From Hyphochytrium catenoides (lineage: Eukaryota; Protista; Hyphochytriomycota), in the NCBI GenBank assembly GCA_900088475.1, contig FLMG01004362.1:1-40416 (forward strand): a stretch of 40,416 bases of DNA, given 5' to 3'. The notes beneath the pieces are model-generated. The model made no database searches. It had not been told where the DNA came from and saw nothing but the letters and a program-made list of their open reading frames with translations. Position 1 is the stretch's first letter; each line of letters starts with the position of its first letter. Of this stretch, positions 121 to 36,685 are shown one piece after another. The position numbers were made by a program, and so were the translations under genes.

Positions 121-551
121 GGTCTTCTTCCTACATACAGAACGGCAAGAAAAGAGCTCTTGGCCTGTTTGTTGGCTATAGAACAGTGGAAGTGGTGGCC
201 TCACACAGACACTGCAAGGTCAGCTGAGAGTGTTGGTGCGGCGGTACATGCCAACTCACTGTTAGATTACTTCTGCCCTTGCGAAAAGACAGGCAGAGCA
301 CGGCAGACGAGAGGCAGAGGCTGTTGACTTTTCTTCTGAGTTGGGGAAGTAGTGGAAGACTCGTGCTGAGAATAGCGGTCAGATCGAACAGCCAGCTGCA
401 CTAGAGGAGAGACATTGGAGGCACATGTGCATTGCTCAATCTCTGTATGCGTCCTGCTCTAGTCATCCGGATATAAATTATAGGACTCTGAAGCTGCTAC
501 GTCTAGTCTAGAGCTCAGTAGCACTCCTCTTCCTGGAGACTTCAGATCCTC

Positions 552-1922
552 ATGGGCAACGGTCAGAGTGATCCATATGCGTCGCCCAAAGCGCAGCCAC
601 TCCAGCAGGTCTCTCCTGGAGCTAGTCACAAAGACCTGAGCAGTCGTGGACCAGAATACACAGCATCTCCTGACAGAGTCCGAGATCATCCCTCTAGAAA
701 CCTCTTTCCTCAGGTGACCGGCTACTATTCGGATCCCAAGACGGGAAGACTGCTCTATACGATCGAGGTTCCTGGACGCAAAGGTAAGCACTGCAGCTCT
801 TGCGCTGGGGTGGTCGTACGGTGTAGACGAGGACTGTAACAGCCAGAAACGGAACAGATTCTTCTCTAGAGAATATGAGGAGAGACACAGTCAGGAAGAT
901 AGTCCCTTCTTGAAGTGAGTGGGCTAAACAAGGAAGGCAAAGACTGACAGATGGGAGAGAGACGGAGGGTCTAATGCGAACTATTAGAAAAAGGTTAATG
1001 ACTGCGGCAGCAAAGAGTGAAGGTAAAGGGGAAAGAGGTTGGGCCGTAGCTTTGCTCTGTGCGAAGCTCTATCTAGGGCCTTCCCTCCGTGCAACTGGCT
1101 GATTGTCTGACTCTGTTCCGTTCGACAGGGCGCCTGACGGCATACAGCATCAAGCGGCGGTTAAGTGACTTTCGGAAGGTATACAAGCATCTGGAGAAAC
1201 TCATAAATGACGAGCATGTCCCGGCCACTGGACCCCACTACCGAGCGGCATCCTTTGACGAGGAGGAGGCCTATCACGAGTTAGTGCTACCAAGCTTCCC
1301 CGAGGACTCAGTCCTGCACAAGGTGGCGCGGTATGGCTTCGGTTATCGGGGTCATGGGCTCATGATGGACAGAATCAAGAGCTTACAACGGATCCTAGAC
1401 GTTGCCACCTCGCATCCACGTACGAGGGACTGTCCGCCTCTCATCGAGTTCTTAGGTCGGCCTCCCGATGATACTCAGGAGTCGAGATATGTCTCCTTCG
1501 AAGAGTACGCCGTGCCAAGGCGCCTTACTTACTCTTGTGAGCTCAGGGAGAGGAGAAAGCTGGTGGCAGAGTCACCCAGAGCTATTAGCATAGCAGCTTC
1601 CCGGCGGCAGAAGAAGAAGCGCCGACTGCGGAACAGCAAACACGGGGAAATAGCCAGTTTTGATACGTCGACAGCCGGCAGTCCTGATGAGCCCAAAGTA
1701 TGGTTAGGCCCTGACCATCGAGCCCTAACGGAGGAGGACTTACTGCTCAAGCGTGCTCATGCGCTAGAGGAGCTCTCTAAGACTTTCATAGAGGAAGCGC
1801 CCGAGGAAGAAGAAGCAGCGACAGCCTCAGATCAAGAAACTCCTAGATGCACCCGGCGGCCTAGCCCGTCTCACAAACGACTGAACAGTGTAGGAGGAGT
1901 GACGGCTGCAAAAGGGGCTTGA
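552..1922 (+). CDS. PX (Phox homology) domain protein with N-terminal myristoylation-like motif; 2 exons (552-783, 1129-1922)
   Basis: G|GTAAG donor at 784 and CAG| acceptor at 1128 join in frame: LLYTIEV..GRLTAYSIKRRLSDFRKVYKHL..LPSFPED..DRIKSLQRILD..HP..LIEFLG, the PX pattern (RRxSDF, LPxFP, RxxxLxxxL, FL). Starts MGNGQS. Confidence 0.85.
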
Positions 1923-14059: not shown

Positions 14060-17000
14060 CTAAGAAAGTTCGAAGCCTGAGTGAGAGTTGATGGCTTGGA
14101 GCAGCTTGGTCCTCAGCACAGCCTCAGAGGGGTAGGCGGGCAGCTTCAGCACATTGAAGCACGTGGAAGAGAACGGCAGTGCGTTCGCATCTACTTTGAC
14201 CTGATTCACATGGAAAAGATGAGGTTAAGCTTGAGCTGACGGCAGAGCACTACGCCTATCCCTATTACAATGCGAACAACGAAAACTGGTACATTATGAT
14301 TCTCTTGCGCTGAAATAGAGCAGCTTTCTCCTTAGCATGCGTCCCGCTCTTCTGAAACTCTAGTCCGAGGACCCAATGGTCCCTCTTCTTCTTCTCATTC
14401 ACCTCCCTCCCACCTTCCCCTTTGTTCTCGCTCACCTTCATGATTGTAAGAGGAGGATCTAGAGCCGAGAAGCCAAGCGGTGGCGGCCGCTCACAGCTCG
14501 TGACAAACTTCAAAAGAAGCGCTTGCTCGCCTGGAGTCATGTCCTTCACCACCTGGTCGCCAGAAGGTTAGAAAAGGCACCAGACACCCAGCTCGAGAGG
14601 GAATTGAAATTGAGTCTTGAACGATAGCGCAAGAGAATGAGACGGTAGCCCAACAGAGACAACAGCCAAGGGGAGCCAACGCAGCCACGCTTTGCAGCTT
14701 ATTAGTCACATTGAGCTGGGATGTGAAGAGAGTAGAGAGGTAGCGGACTCCGCGCTTAGGACATGAGGAAGGAGAGCAAGAGACAATGCCTAGCCGCGCC
14801 TTACCTTCCAAAACCTCCTGATGGTCTTGTCTGCCGGATAGTATCCGCCCGCATACCGTGTGTGCCGTATCAGATCCTCTAGGTCCACCGCCCCGTACAC
14901 CCCAGAGATCAGGACTTGCAGCTCTGGTTCGTTGAAAAAAAGTAGCAAGGACGGGTCCAGGACTTCCCTGAAGCCCCTCAGGAACGCCGTGGTCTGCCTG
15001 TCGATCCTCCGCGTGAGGTAGTAGTGAGCCACCAAGTGGATATACCGCAGCTTGTTCTCCGCCGTCACCACTTTATCCTTTCCCCCATCCAACAGCTCCA
15101 CCTCCTCTCTCTGTCCTAGACTGTCCTCCACCACCGTGAATGTCAGGCCTAAGTCCTCAATGGAGCCGTCATAATGCTTCAGAAACACCAGGTTCTTATA
15201 GATTTCTACGTCCAAGGAGGGCAGATCGTTCAAAGAGTTCTGGTTGCCTAGCATTTTGCTGAGAAAGAAGTGTGCAAAGCGTGGCTGGACAGTCAGCCCT
15301 TCATAGAGCGCCTTGGCCAGCACTCTTCCTAGGAAAGAGAGCATTCTGAGATCATCCTGTCCATGTATGATGCGTGAGAGTGGAGAAGGGTAAAGCAGAT
15401 TGTCCCCCGTGGAGAGGAAAAAGCCATGCGCAGGAGTGAAGGCGGACCGCGCAAACTCTGTCCAGAACTCCTTGAAGAGTCCTCCAGAGTCTATTCCACT
15501 CTCTCTTTCTCCAAACTCATTGACGAAGGAGACGATCACTCTCTTCTTCAGGGAAGAGCCAAGCCCATCCAGCTTTTGGAAACCGTCTTCAAGCACATGT
15601 AGTCTCCGAATGGATACGTTAATCCCTGGAAGACGTTCCCTCTCGGTTCCTTGAAGCTTTTCTCTCTCTCTCTTTAAGAGAATCTGGAACAGTTTGGCAC
15701 GTTCCACGAAGGAGATAGCTGATGAAAAGAGGAGCAAACAAAGGGTCATATTGGTCCGGCGTATCCAGGCGAAGTGACAAGAAAGGGGCACATATGGCAC
15801 TGTAGCAGATTCTTGGAAAGTAACGGGCAGGAGAAGGGGAGAGGGTTGAGACAATGAAAGATGAAAGAGACTAAAGAGAGAGCGAGAGAAGGAAGAAGAG
15901 GTCAATGGGGGCCTACCATATGGCATAGCCCTAAGAAGCTTGGAGGCATTGGCGTTGCCTGGAGTCACCAAAGGCTATGAATTAGTTGAAGAAGAGGAAC
16001 AGCACCATACTCAATCCTGCCTCTCAGACACTGCTCATCCCTCAATCCTTCTTGTCCCCGCTCCCGTTCCCAAGCGATTTCCACAGAAGTCGCATCTCTC
16101 TCTCTACCTCCGCCACCTATCTCCGAACTACATCGCTTCCCAAACTCTAGGAAGAGTTCCTGCTCCTCACCGGCCAGCACTTCGTTTATGAAGTCTCCTG
16201 AAAGCTCAAAAACTTGCCAGCTGCTGCTGCTGCAATAGGGCCGCCGAGAGCACCGCGAGTAAAGAGACTTCAGCACCGAGGAAAGGTGGCTGATAACGCT
16301 CCATAGAGGCTAGATCAAACAGCGCGAACATGAGATGAAGACACAAGGGTTAAGCAGGATTGAGAGGCCGTGGAAGCAGAAGATGTAACATGTAGAGCTG
16401 CAGGGAAAGATTATATCCCGCTACAGCCTTCCTACCTGCTGTTCGCTCTCTGCAATAGCAAGCTCTTCAGGAAAGAAGCGATACATCCTGGGACAGAAAG
16501 CAAAGGCTGTGAACCTCACAAGAGAAAGGAGAAGTCAATGCAGTCTCTCTTCACCTGAAGAGAATCCGCTTAGTGCAGAGTATGAAGCGCTCTATCTCGA
16601 AGAGAGGCAGAGGGTACTGCTCTTCGTACATCTCTTCGTCTCCTAAGACCAGAAGGAGATGTGTATAGGTCGCAGCGAGAACGTTGAGAAGAGAGAGAGG
16701 ACCCGAGGGATAGCCAGGACTGTACTGCAGCCTCTCAGCCCAGCTCTTAACATCTATCGAGTCCTGAAAGGTGAAAGTGAGCAACCTAATTGATTGACAG
16801 CACTATAGCGGGAGATGTTCTCCAAATCGACAATCGGTGGCCTGAGGTTTGGCTTTTGATAGAGCAGAGCAAGCTTGAAGAGGCTCTAAGCATTAGAGCT
16901 TTCAAGGACGCTGAAGCCCACACGTGAGCACCATTGAGGGCACAAAGGGATATACGAACTTTTTGAGAGGGCAGCGAAGACGAGTAAGCTGACGAGAGAG

Positions 17001-20000
17001 GCTGTCTGGCAAATTTGTAGGGAAGGATGGGAGGAAGAGGTCTTGGGAAGAGTCACACAGCTGTCTACCTGTAGGATGGTCCAAAGGTTCTCTATAACAG
17101 AAGCGGAAGAGTGTTGAGGCACCGCTGTTTCCGTCGGTCGTCGTGGGAGCTTCGAGAAGGAAAGAGTGCTTAGGACCGCAAGGGAAGAAGGCATCTTGCT
17201 GCTGGGCCAACGGTGAAGGAAGATGCTGACGAGGTAGCAGAAGGATGGCACTGCGTCCGCGTCATACGCTACCCCACCTGAAGTGCTTTCTAAAGAAAGG
17301 ACACCAGTAAGGGGGGTCAGAGATAATTTTTGCCAGTAGCGAGAGGATAGAAAAACGGGGAAGAGGAATGTGAGATCAAGAGGGGAGACGGCACTTGTCA
17401 GCCATGTAAGGATATCGCCGTTGTAGGATATCGCCATAATAGCTAAAAGGAGAGACTACCCTCACCTGTCTCTGTCTGTGTCTCTTCTTCTTGCTTCAAG
17501 CTGATATCTCGCAGCCTGTCCTCGATATTTCGCTCTCCCGAAGGTTTGAAGCTGAAGAGACGCTGTGCCCACCTGTTAACAGCGAAGAGGTCAGTGCGAA
17601 AAGAGGGCAGATAACAAGCACACAGAGGATGGCAGATGTTATCTCCCAGGGAGCTGCAGTGATGAAGGAATTAGACGGATGGCCCACCGGACTGTAAGAA
17701 GCAACGCTGGAAGGAGAGAGGGGATTGACTGACGTGTCCCAGAGAGAGGGTGAGAAAGAGGGACGAGAAAGAAAGAGAGAAAATTGCATGCGAGGAGTCC
17801 GACGAGAAAAAGGAAGGGCGATCTCTTCTTTGGGAAGAGAAACTCCACTCTTGAATTCTCACCTGGAATTCTTCCACATAATGCTGATCTTCTTTTGCAA
17901 AGTTAGCTTCTCAGGCACAATGCTCGCGAATCCATACCTAAGAAAAAAACAGGAAACTCAGATGACATCATCGGCAACAACCACGTAAAGTCCATCCGTC
18001 AAGCGGAGTAGGGAATAGATCCAATGGGACCACATATTTAGGTACCGGGACACAAGGAGAAAGTCGGGGAGAACAAAGAGTGAGATCCGGCTCACCGCAG
18101 TGCCTCGTCGGCTGCTTGAGGGTTCAGTGCCTCAGGTTTCTGGGTTCTATTGAGCGGCTGCCGAAGCAGGTTCTCATCTATGGGTAGCGACCGCTGGATG
18201 AGTTCCAGTAAGAACCTATCGCCAGGGACAGTTAGCTTGCAGCGCTGGAAGAGACAAAGATAGCCCATAATGGACTATCAGAGAAAGAGACTATGTCCAG
18301 ATGGCAGCAGAGAGAAAGCAGAGAGGTGGGAAGGCCATGAATAGGGTGTCTCGCAGAGCAGAACCTGTGGTCAAATAGATGGTCAAGTCTCTTTCTTAGG
18401 TTGGAAGGGAGCACTGTCGGCCGCAATATCGTGCTGGAACTCCCTCCCCAAAGTAGTCCTGCCGGCGAATAGACACCGTCTGGCACGGTCATAAGCAGCG
18501 ACGCCAGCATTTCGCAATCCAGCGCTGGCTGCACAACTGAGGTCCTGCTATATATATGGAGCAGGTTGGACAGCAGCCTGAAGATAATGTTGAATTTGGT
18601 CAGTTTTCACGCCTTCCCTTCTCTTTCCAGTCCTCTTCTTCCCCTCCCCACAATTGGCTATCCCGTCTCAATCTCTAGCTCAGCTCTGAAGCTCGTTGCC
18701 TTCAAAAGTTAGGCCCTCAGTCATTATCACTTATCCTGCTCCTTTTGCTACAGCCAACTTTTGGAGATAAGAAAGAGCAGCTCGCCCATGTTATCCTCAC
18801 CAGACGTCAGTCCCAATCTCCGGCGCCAAAGGCTCAGGAAGATCTGGCCGCAGGCAGAGATAGGAGGAGAGCAGAGTACTCCACAGCGAGGGAGATGTCA
18901 TCCGCAGCAAGATGTCCTTGTCCAGCATCGCGGACACTCGGGGCACAGTCAAAATCTAGATGTTCGTTCTTCATAAGGAAATGGACTTTCAATCGGAGTG
19001 AGCCTGCGCGCTGAGTGACCTACCTGAGCACAGAAGGACGCTGCATACTTTTCTCGCGTCTTGTCGTCTCCTCTTTTCCCAATTAGCGGCAGTAGCAGGA
19101 CGCAAACGGCGTCACTGAAGCCCCCAATGCCCTTTTTAGGTTCATAGGCGGGCAATGCTAGGGAACTTAAAAGGCAGCGACGAACCGGCTGGAGAAGAGA
19201 TGACGGAGAAGAAATCAGACCGTCCAGCAATGTGACTCCCAGTCTGGAAGGCGGCGGTACAGCCCCTTCTGATTTGGGTTGAGGCTTAGACCCCAAGCCC
19301 GTAACCCTGCAGCAGAAGCTCGCCAAAAGATGAAGGGCCGAGTCTTGGCCCACCTGCGAGAAAGCGGTCGTCAAAGAGAAGGAAGGAAGGTTTGTTTCCT
19401 GAACCAAGAGCTACCGCCCTCTTCCCCACAGTGAGAACTGAGCCCGACGAGAAGCCACCAGAAGAAGGAGGAGGAACAGACAGAAAAGGACCAGGAACGA
19501 TAACATATGCGAATTTGGGAGAAAGCGGAGAGAGATGGGACGGGAAAGGCCAAGAGAGAAAGACTCATGCAGCCTCAGCCTGCAGACCATACAGCTGTCT
19601 ACATGCCCAGACCTGGCAGCGGTAGAGGGACCTGCTTCCAAGGCCCAAAATGACGAAACTCCGCAGTTCTCTTGAAGCTACTGTCTCTGAGGGACAAGGG
19701 CGTGGTATGCGAGTGAGATCTTCCAGCTTGGTCGCATGGTCAAAACCACAATAGAAGAGTAGGGCAGACTCGCGTGAAGAAACAAAGGAACAGAAGCGAA
19801 GAGAGGACATCCTAAGGCGAGTGCATACCAAACTAGGTAAGTTAGCTAGAACTATGCAGAAATGAACCAACAAATGGAATAGAAAAGCAAGAAGATAACA
19901 AAGGAGCCTATCGTCCACCTGCAATGGCCTCCTGGGGTTCCACTTTGTCGGCTTGGCCACTATCTAAACTCTGCAGCAGCAGCAGCGCCATCCCGTGGAA

Positions 20001-29360: not shown

Positions 29361-30490
29361 TCATCGATGAGCTCTCTCCCCGAGAGCCAGTCTGTAGAAG
29401 GTGGTGATAGACTTGGAAGCCCTAGAAAGAACCTAGGTGTCAATGCAGTCCCAGTCTTGGAAAGAGCTGCTTTGGCAGAGTTCCTACCTTGTTGCTGCCT
29501 CCACACATTCAAAGAAGGAGCCTCTGGGCATGAGTCCTGCATTAGATTGACAAGGTCAGCACCTTACAAAGTAGGCTGCTCCTTCATGGGCTTACCTGTC
29601 GCCTTTGAGTAACTGACGCTGCCGCTTTCACTAGCCTCTCCCACCAGGCAGCTCACTGCCTCACAGTCCTGCCCTCGATAGGTCAGCAACGAGATGGAGT
29701 TCGCCAAGCTATGCGCCCTACCTTATCCTCTTCCTTCGTTGGATCCATTAGGAGAGAGCCCGTTGCTGTCAACCCTACACTGATGGCTACTGGGAGCATT
29801 CGAAGCGCTATGCCTAGACACGGAAGAGCGTAAGATAGCTTGCCCTGTTAGAAGCCAGCAATCACGCACCTGCATCTATGAGAGCCAAGACGGTGCCATT
29901 GATGGCGGCTGCAATGACGTGGGATCGTTAAGGGAGAACATGCACAGACGCTATAATTGAGAAAGATTGGTAGGACGTGCTAAAGGAGAGGCAGAGACTG
30001 GCATTGAGAAGGATATCGAGCCATCGTCCGAAAGAACTTGCACGACAATGCTGATTACTGTTCGCGGGTAGCTAGATAAGAGGACGGCAGGCTCAACTGC
30101 TCCTCTGACGGCAAGCTCGATCTCTTTCTCTACTGGACCTGTTAAAGCAAGCAAATGTCAAAGTCCACTTGCTTAGGCATGGTGGCACTTTTTCCAAGCA
30201 ATACCTGTCACACCAGTGCCAGGTTTGAGCTGTACCTCCAAGGTCGCGCCAACAGACGACTCGCGAAAGGTCTGACGAGGCTTGGCAGGTCCAAAGATGC
30301 CCACCATCACCGACGTAGAGCCTAGAAAGCAGGCAAAGTCAATAGATAACGTAAGACACTGCATCTAGACGAAGAGCTTACCAAAGGCGAAACGGGCGGA
30401 CCCATCAGCCCTGTTCAACACGTTCTGCTCGCACCCAGGCTGGCGCACCTGGTTAGCCTGTCTTCCATCAGGCCTGGCCCGTCCCGTCAT
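29361..30490 (-). CDS. RRP46: Exosome complex component RRP46 (RNase PH family), multi-exon
   Basis: RPDGRQANQVR..LNRADGSARFAFGSTSVMVGIFGP..LEVQLKP..YPRTVISIVVQVLSDDGSVIAAAINGTVLALIDAGI..LMDPTKEE..ASKSITTFYRLAL; stop TGA at 29361-29363. Confidence 0.92.
29919..30016 (-). other. U12-type (minor spliceosome) AT-AC intron, 98 nt, in RRP46
   Basis: 5' end ATATCCTT, branch motif TCCCTTAAC ending 8 nt before the exon boundary, 3' end CAC; excision joins DDGS|VIAAAING in frame, while retention hits TAG at 29951-29953. Confidence 0.93.
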
Positions 30491-30815: not shown

Positions 30816-33800
30816 ATGGAAAGCTCTGAAATTGGTGTCAGAAGCCAGAAACAGAGAATCTGCATCTTCATCACGGGGAGGACCAGAGTCCAGACTCTCG
30901 ATGAAGAGACAGGGAGGCCAGCGAATCTGGATGGCCTAGGGAGAGGAGGGACCAGGTCAAAGATAGCACACTCATTGTTCGCTCTTGTCAATCTTAAGAT
31001 CTGCCTAGTGTGAGACACTATGCTGCTCCCAGGGACAGGTTTTGCTGGCACCTTTTGTGACACTGAGCTTGAGAACAGTTGGTGATGCTCCATCGAATGA
31101 CAGAGAATGGTTCTCAGGTGTTGGCTCTCAAGGTGTTATTCCTCTCCTGAGGTCATGGGGAACCGTGTGTGTGGCGAGAGGGGTAACAGGTGGTGATGGT
31201 TTGCTATAACCAGAGTCAAAGGATGCGTTGGTATACTGCGCACTCTATTCCGGAGTTCAGTGTGGAGCTCCTGTCCGATATCAACGGCAAGAGCGATAAC
31301 TTTGACGGTACATTACACTACGTATAAATTCTATTCAACTGTCCGACGAGACTGGATTCTGACAGTAACTCCACAGGGCCAACAGAAGCAAGTCCAGTTG
31401 CAGGTCGGGTCGGTGCTCCTTGCGCAGAAGAAGTAGAGCCCAAGCTTGATCGGCACGCTGCTGTCAGCATACCCTTGCCAGTTGCGTCCGAGAATGATGA
31501 AAGACAAGAAGTGGGTAGGTCAAACGGGACTGCCAGTCCACAGCCGCAAGGAAATAACGCTTCTCCACTTAGCATCACACTCTTCTTCATACGACGGAAG
31601 GACCAATGGAAAAGGAAAGGCGGAGGACGCCGCCAATAACGCCTACGCCACTCCAAGGTTTAATGCTTCTAAAGGTAGGTTCTAGTGCAGCCTTTGTCAG
31701 TGCGATCCGCGCTGGAAGAGCTTATATTCACTTACCGCAGGAGGAGAACCACCTCAGTCGGCAGCAGGGACCGTGTCATCCTTGTTTATGACAGGCCGCG
31801 GCCATCGTGTGAAGCTCAGTGCCGCCAGTCTCGAAGCTGCATCTGCAGCAGTGCAGACCTTGGAGGAAACCGAGCGCGCGGGGAAGGCTATCGAACAGCG
31901 AAAGCGCACACACGGTGGTCAGCTCATAGGAAAACCCGAAAGCAAAAGACGTAACTTCATCCCGCCAGGCAGTGCTCCAACTGAGCGGAAAGGTTTTGAG
32001 GAGAAAGGATCGCGCCCCAATCTTTCCCGAGGAGGTCGACCAAGATTCGCATTGCCTGCTCATGAGTCAGAGCCGCGGCCTGCTGACGAAAGTGGAAGAG
32101 AAACAGAGCTGACCAAGCAGACGGCAAGCAGCCTCCATAAGAACCACGAAACCTCTAACGCAAAACTAGCTCCACCGAACGATAATGGACATCAGGGGGA
32201 ATTAAAAGCTTATCAAGGCCGCCACTCTTTTCCTGAGCAAAAGCATGGCCTCACTCCTACCAAACGCCGCTTAGAGCAGGACCAAGATGCTCCGTCCAAT
32301 GCTCGCAGGGTGCCGGACCGTATGGCGTTGGTAAAAAGAGCTCCAGGAGTCAGAGGAGACCGCCAATTCAGCATTAAAGAGCCAGGGCAGGCGTTTAAGC
32401 AGTCACATTCTGATAGTGATTACACGGATAAGTTCCCAGATGGCCGCCATCCTCCAGAGTCCTCCGGTGCAGCAGGATTCCCGTCTCTGTTCCAGACAGG
32501 TGGGGGTAGACGGATAGTGCTCTCTGAGGAGAAGCTTATGAGCGCGTCCGCGTGGCTTGCAGATGAAACTCTGGCAGGAACAAGAGCGGGATTGTCTCCA
32601 GCAAATGCATCATCAGCGGCTAGCCGCGGAAGTCAATCCCTAAGCAGCTCTAGCGGACCTCTCAATGTTAATGATAGGGCTTCAAACAGATCTGACTTGA
32701 AGGAGAGAGTAGGTAGCGCGCCGTTAAAAAGCAAGGAGCATATGGTTTCTTCTGGCTTCAAGACTGCTAGAGACCAACCAGTCTCTATCTCTGCTACCGC
32801 CCTCAAGGAGGCGGAGCGGCGAATATGGAGCTATGATTGCGAGCATAGTGAGAACGAGACTGCTGCCAGCCAAGAGAAGGAGAACCGTAGCAACGGTCAC
32901 CTCTCTGCACTCCAAGATGTACCCCTGAGGCCTTCTGTAGAGCAAATTTCTTTTGGGTCTCGGGCCGTCGGAATGGCTGACGGGACGTCCAGCATCGCGT
33001 CCCTAGTTCCGACAACACGAGGCGCCCTTGAGCGACTGCAGCACAATCAGATTGAAGAGCAAGTTAACGCTGCACATAGAGCCAAACTTTTCGGTAGCCC
33101 GCCTTCTTCTACGGCTAGGGCTCGTGGTATAGTGAAGGACTCGGTCTCCCTAGAGGCGGCGTATGGAGTCAAGGACACTGGCCATCCTGTTGTGGAGAAG
33201 TCTGAAGAGGCTTCTTCTAAACAGGTCCTTTCTGCTTTCACAACCGGCAGAGATCGACGCATCTCTCTCTCCGCTGCGGCCCTCCATGAAGCTGAGATCA
33301 GGCTACTGGGTTCTGAAGAGGAGGTAGAGGATTCTACTCCTTTGAGTCTGCAAAACGTTAGTGGCCAGCGCCTTCAAGACCGCAAACCTTTAAGGTCCTC
33401 CTTGGATGGTGGGACGAAGCATACTATTATGAGTTCATCTGCCGAAGGGAAGCATGACGTGACGGCTGTCGTTTCGTTATTCCAAACCGGCAGGGGCGGA
33501 AGCGTTGTCGTATCTAAGAAAAACCTGGACAATGCATTACAAAGGGTAAGGGATCAAGAGAAACTCTCAGAGGTTACGCCGCCGCAGGCGGGCAAGGGAC
33601 AGCTGAAGGCCACAAGTGCCGATCAGGGCAGTTCTTTGCCAAAAGCACCTGCTGAGCAATTGCAGGAAGATGGACAGGGCAGCACCTCCAAGGGAAGTGG
33701 CTCTGTCGTGCCGACCTTGTTTCAGACGGGTCGAGGCATGGCGGTGAGCCTCAGCGCCGAGAAGTTGGCTGCGGCCGAGGTTGCCGTCCACGCGACGGAC

Positions 33801-36685
33801 ACCACCAAGGTAAGCTTAGTCTTACGGTTCCTGATTATCTTTTCACTGGTCCAAGGTTAATTTAGTCCATGACGTCTACATAGGAGTGCACTTCGCGCGG
33901 AGGTCTCACCTTATCTCGACCGCAAGCAAGCAGAGGAACGAGTGCCGAGCTTTCTCCAGAGACTTCGGCCCACGGTACTCTCTTAACACTAGTGTTAAAT
34001 TTCTGCATCCCATGACCGTCTAACTCCTCTTGACAAGCTGCGCCCCAGACCTCCAGACAACCCGGATCTGGCTGTGCGGGGCATTCGACGGGAGAAGGTA
34101 ATAAGTCCACTCGTCCCGAGTTGATAGACGGATGTGCTAATCTCCCTCTTAGGCATCTCAACATATGAGGACTGCTTGTCGTCGGAGTCTAGGCACTTGA
34201 TCCAAAGCTTTCTACAGCATGAGGAGGAAACGGTTTCCTTCCAGGAATGGGCAGCAAGGAATCATGTTGAAGGCGCAGAACGGATGTTCCTGAGAGATAT
34301 GGCGCCGCCTCGCCCTCATACAACTAGTGCCAGTCACGCTACTGCAGCTCTCTCTATACCACGACATGTACGATGGATCTCCTTCTGGAGCGCCAGTAAG
34401 GTTTTGCTTGCCGATCGAAGCGTTTCTGGAGCAGATGTCGCAGTGTCAGATGCTGCGGAAAGTTCGACTTACTCTTGGGCTGACCTACGGCAGTGCTATC
34501 ACCTCCTGCAGGGGTTCAAGGGCATCGAAGCTCTGGAACTTGGATGGTTCACAGTCCACTACCGACAGGTGGTATGGAAGCTCGCTGCCACGGAGAGAGC
34601 ATTTAGTCATCTACTGCAGAGCCCTTACCTCACCCTTGGACGGGTGCTCGGCCAGATAGCCTATCGCTTCAGGCGGGAGCACCAGGTAACTTGACTTTCT
34701 TCTGATCTCAAACTTCTCCAGCTAATAACTGACGGTGCTTCTCTCTCTCGCTCCCTGTCTCTCTTTCTCTCTCTTCTTCCTCACACATATATACACCACT
34801 CTCCCCCTCTTTCTGCCACTCTCCACCACTATTTGTCTCTTTCTCTCTCTCTCTCTCTATCTATCTACACACTGTTGTTCTTCTCTCTTTTGTATGTGAA
34901 CTGGTTCGCGACTCCATTCTTAGCAACACCAGAGTTCATGCATAAAGGCGTTGCTTTTGATGGACTCTCCTCCTGAGGCATTGCTGGTGCTATTCGTGGT
35001 CTCCATTTTGACGCCACAAAGTGAGTCTCCAGCCAAGAACTCTGCCAGAATAGTCCTAAGTGATGGCTGGTACCTGCTTGTGGGGCAACTGGATCGCGTG
35101 TTAAGTGAGAAAGTTGCCGAGGGCAAGCTCGTTGTGGGACAGAAGCTAATGATCTGTGGAGCCACCCTTGAGGGTCTGCAAGAACCTTCGCATCCGATGG
35201 CGACGACTATTAATCAAGCGGCCAGCGATCCATCCGTGCTCCTTTGTCCTGAGGGTGAGTTTCTGACCGGTGCCATGCCTTTTCTCAAGCTGGCGTATAA
35301 TGGGACCAGGCCAGCGAGGTGGAACTGCAAGCTTGGTTATCAGAGGCCTGGAACTAGCTTCGTACAGTCATTATCGACCATCCATCCAGAAGGCGGTACC
35401 GTCCCTGCACTGGATGTTGCCATCGTAACTCGGTACCCTGAGCGCTGCCTCCATAGCACGTCTGATGGTGCGAGAGTCTCGCTCACATTAGACGAGGAAG
35501 AGGCTCGCCTTTCGGGAGAACCTGTGTCTTCTAAGGGACGGTCACTACTCTGTGCTGAGTCGAGGGCGAGCACCTATCTTACGCTAGCTGTCCGCTCCTG
35601 TCCGCGGGACGGCTCTAGGCCCAGCGAGATTAACGGATGTAAGGCTAAGATCACTTGCTGGCGGCCATCTCCCGACCTAAAAGAAAGGCTTGTAGAGGGC
35701 TCAGTCCTCAGACTCACAAACGTCCGCGTCCGGCTCGCAAGGTCTACCGCCAACCTCACTTCTAGTGGTGGTCCTGACCTCCTCGAGCTTCAACCAACCA
35801 AGCGTACGATGTGGAGGCCACGGGCCTCGCCTCCGCAAACACAATGCTCCTCAACAGCTCCTAGACGAGCGCTATCTGCTCTCAATGCTCTCAGGGCTAG
35901 CATAGGGTCAGAAGTGGACGTTGAAGGTGTTATCGTGTGCACCATTGAGGGGGAAGAGACTGACGGTTTATTCACAGAGTCTGTCTTTTTCACTGATGAG
36001 TCCTTGCAGCTAGCGGTTATCAAGAGGAGGTTTTACGTCCGAGTACCAGGGATGTGGGGCAGAGGTCTTTACCCGGCTATTATGATCCGCAATCTAGTGG
36101 TTGGGCCCTATGATCATAGCATGGGGGTGAGGACTTTCACCTGGGCTGACACCGCAGAGGCGAGAGTCGTCCAGCGGGCTCAGTCGTCCACTCGACATGC
36201 TCTTATTCATCGCTGGCTAGCGTCTGAGGATGGCCAGGCTGCCCTTGGAAGCTGCAGATGCTGGCTCCAGAGGCGGATACACTCTGAAGGCACTTCTCCC
36301 TATTCGGACGTGCTGGTCAGAGCTAATGAACTTCACAAAGTCACCGGATACATCCTGTCCGTCCTCCCAGCGCAGGACGCATCCCTGGGGTTAAACGAAG
36401 AGCTCTATCACGTTATCGTCGAGGACAGCAACAGCTTGTTGTCCCTCTCTATAGAGGCATCGCTGCTGCTGGACCATCTGATGGTAAGTCTACAGACTGG
36501 GTGCAGACCTGCTCTATTCATCCGAAGCCCCAGATCTATCTTCTAACCGATCTACGTAGGCAAACGGCGACAACTTCTTCTTCCGAGGGATTCCAGTCAC
36601 ATTATCTGTCAATGAACAGAATAGGGTGACAGCCATTTCCTCTCCATCGTCAACGGCAGCATCGTTAGCAGCAGACGCAAGTTAG
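30816..36685 (+). CDS. BRCA2: BRCA2 homologue (BRC repeats, helical domain, OB folds); well supported from 31741, 5' exons and start codon uncertain
   Basis: Six BRC-like repeats; helical domain WFTVHYRQVVWKLAATER..VLGQIAYRFRRE; OB1 LSDGWY..GKLVVGQKLMICGA..LAYNGTRPARWNCKLG; OB2 GGTVPALDVAIVTRYP; OB3-like SEVDVEGVIV..VFFTDESLQL; last exon ends TAG 36683-36685. Confidence 0.9.
34738..34890 (+). repeat. CT-rich microsatellite-like tract in a BRCA2 intron
   Basis: Runs of (CT)n such as 34843-34858; similar tracts at 6851-6910, 7731-7800 and 12830-12860. Confidence 0.75.

Follow-up and report, generated by a model that had tools for sequence, protein, structure and literature searches.

Does the RRP46 gene of Hyphochytrium catenoides contain a U12-type AT-AC intron, and would such an intron mean that this organism has kept a minor spliceosome? 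The question is raised by 98 nucleotides on the minus strand of contig FLMG01004362.1 (assembly GCA_900088475.1), which was analysed as one stretch of 40,416 nucleotides, hereafter called the window. As predicted from its sequence, intron 3 of RRP46 is very probably a genuine and ancient U12-type AT-AC intron, to which we give a probability of about 0.88. What the analysis shows is the motifs, the intron borders, that the gene is orthologous to RRP46, and that the intron is at a conserved position; from these we infer actual splicing and its dependence on minor snRNAs.

RRP46/EXOSC5 is a core subunit of the RNA-degrading exosome and belongs to the RNase PH-like subunits of its ring. In the spliced model, the coding region occupies 30490..29361 on the minus strand, from an ATG at 30490 to a TGA at 29363..29361, and its eight exons and seven introns encode 223 aa. 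All features of this gene given below are on the same strand. Pfam was run on single exons of RRP46; exon 3 alone matched RNase_PH (PF01138) at 7e-06, above the cut-off, and exon 5 alone matched RNase_PH_C (PF03725) at 0.002, which narrowly missed it. Exon 3 (30017..30138), which ends in ...VLSDDGS, aligned end to end with residues 93-130 of human RRP46 (...SDAGS), and exon 4 (29870..29918), which encodes VIAAAINGTVLALIDA(G), aligned to homologs without gaps. A search with exon 3 of 1.84 billion representative proteins returned full-length relatives, the best of them 62% identical. BLASTP with the spliced model matched relatives over the full length (4e-49 to P0011 and 5e-41 to P0001), and the named family members among the homolog matches are called 'Exosome component 5' or 'RRP46 homolog'. 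Five paralogues, RRP41, MTR3, RRP42, RRP43 and RRP45, were considered for the identity of the gene. A profile built from the eight nearest homologs of the model gave 6e-75 for human RRP46 and 8e-61 for rice RRP46, followed by 2e-44 for RRP41 and 1e-27 for MTR3. The gene is therefore predicted to be the RRP46/EXOSC5 orthologue, an identification that is partly indirect because it comes from single exons and a nearest-homolog profile. About 1.3 kb from the RRP46 ATG, head to head with the gene, lies a BRCA2 homologue with BRC repeats and an OB1 domain (31773..36546, plus strand).

Six of the seven introns are GT-AG introns of 53-66 nt, with donors of the GTAAGC/GTATTG/GTGCGT/GTAGGG type and without U12 motifs. 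Intron 1 (30322..30381, 60 nt, phase 1) is at an ancient position common to Theobroma, Mortierella, Balamuthia and Radiomyces, the position of intron 2 (30139..30204, 66 nt, phase 1) is common to Theobroma and Balamuthia, and that of intron 5 (29669..29721, 53 nt, phase 0) to Theobroma and Radiomyces. Introns 4 (29814..29869, 56 nt), 6 (29537..29595, 59 nt) and 7 (29422..29487, 66 nt) complete the spliced model. Intron 3 (29919..30016, 98 nt, phase 0) is the predicted U12-type AT-AC intron, assigned by motifs, enumeration of reading frames and alignment with homologs. Its junctions read ...GAC GAT GGC TCG/ATATCCTTCTC...TTCTCCCTTAACGATCCCAC/GTC ATT GCA... on the minus strand. Reading that strand from 30900 to 29300 gave exactly the coordinates (30016..29919) and letters of the original prediction.

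Are these the right borders? Read-through of intron 3 reaches a stop after 26 codons (ORF 29951..30154), which indicates that the intron has to be removed for a functional protein to be made. Splicing at 30016..29919 gives DDGS/VIAAAING, without a gap against the RRP46 homologs. We listed all GT/GC-AG and AT-AC pairs near intron 3 that are in frame and free of stops, and found just two GT/GC-AG options: a GC-AG intron at 30021..29909, which removes five residues, and a GT-AG intron at 29976..29909, which adds ten. It had been claimed that no GT-AG solution keeps the conserved DDGS-x-x-AAING motif, and indeed both of these break it. In the AT-AC model the segment from PRT to DAG is 35 residues long, as it is in 49 of the 54 homologs aligned; the GT-AG alternative gives it 45 residues and the GC-AG alternative 30. 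The AT-AC borders are thus the sole donor/acceptor pair that reproduces the spacing of the family. At least one of the five homologs with deviant spacing is a mis-model of this region. In three RRP46 homologs the segment measures 43, 55 or 59 residues instead of the usual 35; these may be further public models in which part of the U12 intron was translated.

If the 68-nt GT-AG pair (29976..29909) were the true intron, removed as a U2-type intron, ATATCCTT would be coding, the protein would read DDGS-ISFSMPVSASPLAP-AING, and the resemblance to U12 motifs would be accidental. Such an intron is in frame and stop-free, its length is near the 53-66 nt of the other introns of the gene, and its acceptor, ...CATTGCAG, looks normal. 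However, it replaces VIA with a stretch of 14 residues and so puts ten more residues into a segment whose length is constant in 49 of 54 homologs. The donor would be GTCCTA, or GTCTTA in the second haplotype described below, unlike the local donors GTAAGC, GTAGGG and GTATTG. It gives up an intron position common to plants, fungi and Amoebozoa, and it leaves unexplained why a perfect U12 donor, a branch element and a terminal AC stand at borders defined by homology. We consider this reading very improbable. The 113-nt GC-AG intron (30021..29909), which would give ...LSDD/AAING..., is also in frame and stop-free, but it costs the protein five conserved residues, among them the G of DDG, which is invariant, and its GCTCGA donor bears little resemblance to the GC-AG consensus; its chance is close to negligible.

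The AT-AC intron carries the signals expected of its class. The consensus signals of U12-type introns are a /RTATCCTTT donor and an UCCUUAACU branch element (PMC2846911). The 5' splice site of intron 3, ATATCCTT (30009..30016), is an exact RTATCCTT match and the predicted recognition element for U11/U6atac; when extended by one nucleotide it reads ATATCCTTC (30016..30008), in agreement with /RTATCCTT(T). The branch-site element, TCCCTTAAC (tCCCTTAAC, 29927..29935), has the core CCTTAAC and the likely branch A at 29928. Read as TCCCTTAACg (29935..29926), it has the exact CCTTAAC core and agrees with the UCCUUAACU consensus at seven of nine positions. It ends 8 nt from the 3' end of the intron, within the required range of -40 to -5. 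The likely branch A is about 9-10 nt from that end. Usually the distance from the U12 branch A to the 3' end is about 10-15 nt, which places intron 3 at the short edge. With the donor at 30016, no AC other than the terminal one (29919..29920) preserves the reading frame, and the spacer between the branch element and the terminal AC is GATCCC, with no pyrimidine tract. The original prediction had named U11/U12 signatures here, and all four features (donor, branch element, AC ends and missing pyrimidine tract) agree with a U12-type AT-AC intron.

Rare U2-type AT-AC introns do exist. It could be argued on this ground that intron 3, in spite of its AT-AC ends, is a substrate of the major (U2-type) spliceosome, in which case it would have no bearing on the minor one, and the window, when searched with Rfam, yielded no minor snRNA. 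Against this, the donor and branch element fit the U12 consensus and not U2-type signals, the intron has no pyrimidine tract, and the orthologous intron of plants, described below, is U12-type. Removal by the major spliceosome is, in our judgement, slightly more improbable still than the 68-nt GT-AG intron.

How much weight can the motifs bear? RTATCCTT occurs five times in the window, against 1.55 expected, and of these five sites only that at 30016 has a branch element and AC at the proper distance. The other four sites, at 2673 (plus), 8960 (plus), 13956 (minus) and 17415 (minus), were tried as U12 introns and rejected, as none has a proper branch element with AC or AG at the right distance. 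The ATATCCTT octamers at 2673, 13956 and 17415 have no usable branch element and are probably chance matches; that at 17415 sits 22 nt inside an ORF that starts with ATG. The segment 8960..9032 (plus) begins with GTATCCTTAAC, followed 50 nt on by TACTGAC and TTAG; it resembles a 73-nt U2-type intron whose donor fits the U12 rule by chance. A loose composite motif, defined as RTATCCTT, then CCTTRAY 20-500 nt on, then AC or AG 5-15 nt further, was found in 16% of simulated 40-kb windows. Motifs alone are therefore weak evidence at the scale of the window. The weight of the case for a U12-type intron lies instead in the fact that both ends of the predicted intron fall on nucleotides defined by homology, at a conserved intron position.

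That position was examined by mapping annotated RRP46 proteins back to their genomic loci and comparing introns by alignment column and phase. Intron 3 of the window is at column 136 in phase 0, straight after DDGS, and three further introns of the window are at shared positions (columns 56, 95 and 184). Comparison with plants had been proposed as a check of the prediction, and in both Theobroma and Arabis an intron was found at the same column and phase. Intron 4 of Theobroma cacao (locus L007) has 322 nt and reads GTATCCCTT...ATCCTTGAT, with AG 15 nt past the branch A; by its letters it is a U12-type intron of the GT-AG subtype. In Arabis alpina (locus L004, intron from 1041), GAT GGT TCT/GTATCCTT...TTCCTTGAT...AG/CTT CTA is found at the same point, and this intron is also U12-type. 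Within 880..1260 of L004 (from CM002873.1), the public model of Arabis alpina omits the 21-nt exon VVHDDGS (about 1020..1040), which has a U2 intron on one side and the GTATCCTT U12 intron on the other, and joins IIQ to LLPCAINAA. As a consequence, the deposited protein P0061 is without seven conserved residues. The prediction that GT-AG gene finders mis-model this gene is thereby borne out at an orthologous U12 intron.

The plant introns resemble intron 3 in gene, in phase 0, in their place after DDG[S/A] and before xxAAxN, and in having a U12-type donor and branch element. They differ in that they are GT-AG introns of 220-322 nt, whereas intron 3 is an AT-AC intron of 98 nt, and in that an extra U2 intron, which the window does not have, creates the 21-nt exon before the U12 intron. 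The U12 intron of EXOSC5 is reported to be one of only two that U12DB gives as orthologous between Arabidopsis and human (PMC2831892), and EXOSC5 appears in lists of human U12-intron genes. For the human intron, the same position would follow from PMC2831892 taken together with our check of plants.

A U2-type intron at the same column and phase is found in the mucoromycete fungi Mortierella and Radiomyces, in the amoebozoan Balamuthia and in contig L013. The last of these is a 290-nt eukaryotic contig (GCA_024513705.1), in which a U2-type intron, GTATAA...TTTAG, follows DDGS at 188..256. In position and phase these introns are identical to intron 3 of the window, but they have GTAAGT, GTATGT or GTAACT donors and no U12 branch element. 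They fit either conversion from U12 to U2 type or a U2 type from the start. No intron was found at column 136 in the mapped loci of Plasmodiophora and several metagenomic relatives. As the position is shared by other lineages, an intron at 30017/30016 is predicted by comparative data. That the intron at this position is of the minor type may be said for plants, the lineage in which the type was read.

Three DNA runs under one organism label (X1-X3) contain the locus and show how it varies. The search for sequencing runs returned these and three tiny unrelated ones, and none of RNA. Their contigs are genomic DNA, with intron 3 in place and no joints. Two haplotypes, present at about equal depth in X1 and X2, are told apart by 12 sites between 29913 and 29973. 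In X1 they agree throughout the 350 nt next to this stretch, and other strain differences are found elsewhere in the gene. The 672-nt coding sequence has seven differences, six of them synonymous and one changing Val to Ala, and the introns have 28. The exonic difference at 29913, in the second codon of exon 4, changes ATT to ATC and is synonymous. The ratio of six synonymous differences out of seven in exons to 28 differences in introns indicates that selection acts on the gene with its exons arranged in this way.

Intron 3 itself has 11 differences, and none of them is in the donor, the branch element or the terminal AC. The donor is identical in both haplotypes, and the branch element is unchanged though its flanks at 29936 and 29922 vary. 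Without constraint, 11 variants would spare the signals with a likelihood of about 8% (p about 0.08), which gives weak support to the U12 signals. The first 43 nt of intron 3 are invariant between haplotypes, and all 11 differences are in the remainder. The 68-nt GT-AG intron would turn the invariant 43 nt into exon, and the pattern therefore fails to separate that intron from the AT-AC model. Intron 2 is likewise invariant in run X1, and heterozygosity is very patchy.

Could the gene be a decaying copy, or intron 3 a relic that cannot be spliced, while another copy of RRP46 is functional? In its favour, the collections searched yielded no transcript or protein of the spliced form from the same organism. 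Specifically, the 28-nt spliced junction of exons 3 and 4 had no match in the scanned metagenome contigs, and no protein of the same organism was found for exon 3 among the 1.84 billion representative proteins or in two later protein searches. On the other hand, the reading frame is open through all eight exons, and the haplotypes differ at seven exonic sites, six of them synonymous, as against 28 in introns. Neither haplotype has lost a splice signal. Decay of this copy seems to us a very remote prospect. An Rfam search of the 40-kb window matched no family, which means that no minor snRNA gene lies within the window.

Where does the organism stand among the stramenopiles? A UBE3C-like HECT ubiquitin ligase exon (14790..15971, minus strand) was used to place it; the window also contains a PX-domain exon (1089..1922, plus strand). 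The best named relatives of the HECT exon are Phytophthora cactorum (52%), then diatoms, brown algae and Guillardia. In a quick tree of this one gene, which should be read with care, the window is within the stramenopiles (SH-aLRT 99), on a long branch that belongs neither to the ochrophyte clade (97) nor to the oomycete clade (97). Judged by this single gene, the organism appears to be a stramenopile separate from the ochrophytes and oomycetes that were sampled. The original prediction had considered the intron notable if it came from an ochrophyte-type alga, and the HECT tree removes that premise.

Minor introns and minor snRNAs are documented in Phytophthora, with a few introns, and in Saprolegnia, with dozens (PMC2846911, PMC10639083). 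Blastocystis has hundreds of short minor introns, of which most are AT-AC and many are in phase 0 (PMC10639083, PMC5608401), and no minor introns are reported from Ochrophyta (PMC10639083, PMC2846911). Genes for U11, U12 and U6atac are reported in the clade Gyrista, and in the same 2024 survey the orthologues of human minor introns were major or absent in the sampled stramenopiles (PMC11347168). A literature search that included the supplement of PMC10639083 found nothing linking Hyphochytrium to the minor spliceosome. The minor introns of oomycetes are comparable to intron 3 in that they also belong to stramenopiles, form a small U12 set that includes AT-AC introns and in part share positions with distant eukaryotes; the difference is that the HECT tree does not place the organism of the window among the sampled oomycetes. 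Blastocystis is likewise a stramenopile with short, mostly AT-AC introns, often in phase 0, but its introns average about 42 nt and are mostly at non-conserved positions, whereas intron 3 is at a conserved one.

By the established mechanism, U11 and later U6atac would pair with the ATATCCTT donor, and U12 would pair with the CCTTAAC branch element. The intron would then be excised between 30017/30016 and 29919/29918, joining ...DDGS to VIAAAING... in phase 0. Since RRP46 is a core subunit of the exosome and read-through of the intron runs into a stop, an organism that uses this gene would have to possess a working minor spliceosome. Intron 3 thus supports the prediction of a working minor spliceosome in this non-ochrophyte stramenopile.

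A further reading is that intron 3 is the minor intron of human and plant EXOSC5, dating from the last eukaryotic common ancestor and kept in AT-AC form in a deep stramenopile that is neither an ochrophyte nor an oomycete and has no published minor splicing. For this combined statement we see an even chance. Intron 3 supports such a date for the minor intron of EXOSC5, and if the human intron is positioned as the literature implies, it would be a small counter-example to the statement on stramenopiles in PMC11347168. To a specialist the intron will be unsurprising, since oomycetes and Blastocystis are already known to have both minor introns and minor snRNAs. Gene finders restricted to GT-AG introns would truncate or distort RRP46, an essential gene, the same error as in the public model of Arabis alpina, and intron 3 is useful in this respect for annotation as well as for surveys of intron evolution. 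With it, a stramenopile joins the few lineages that retain the EXOSC5 intron, which is among the best-conserved minor introns.
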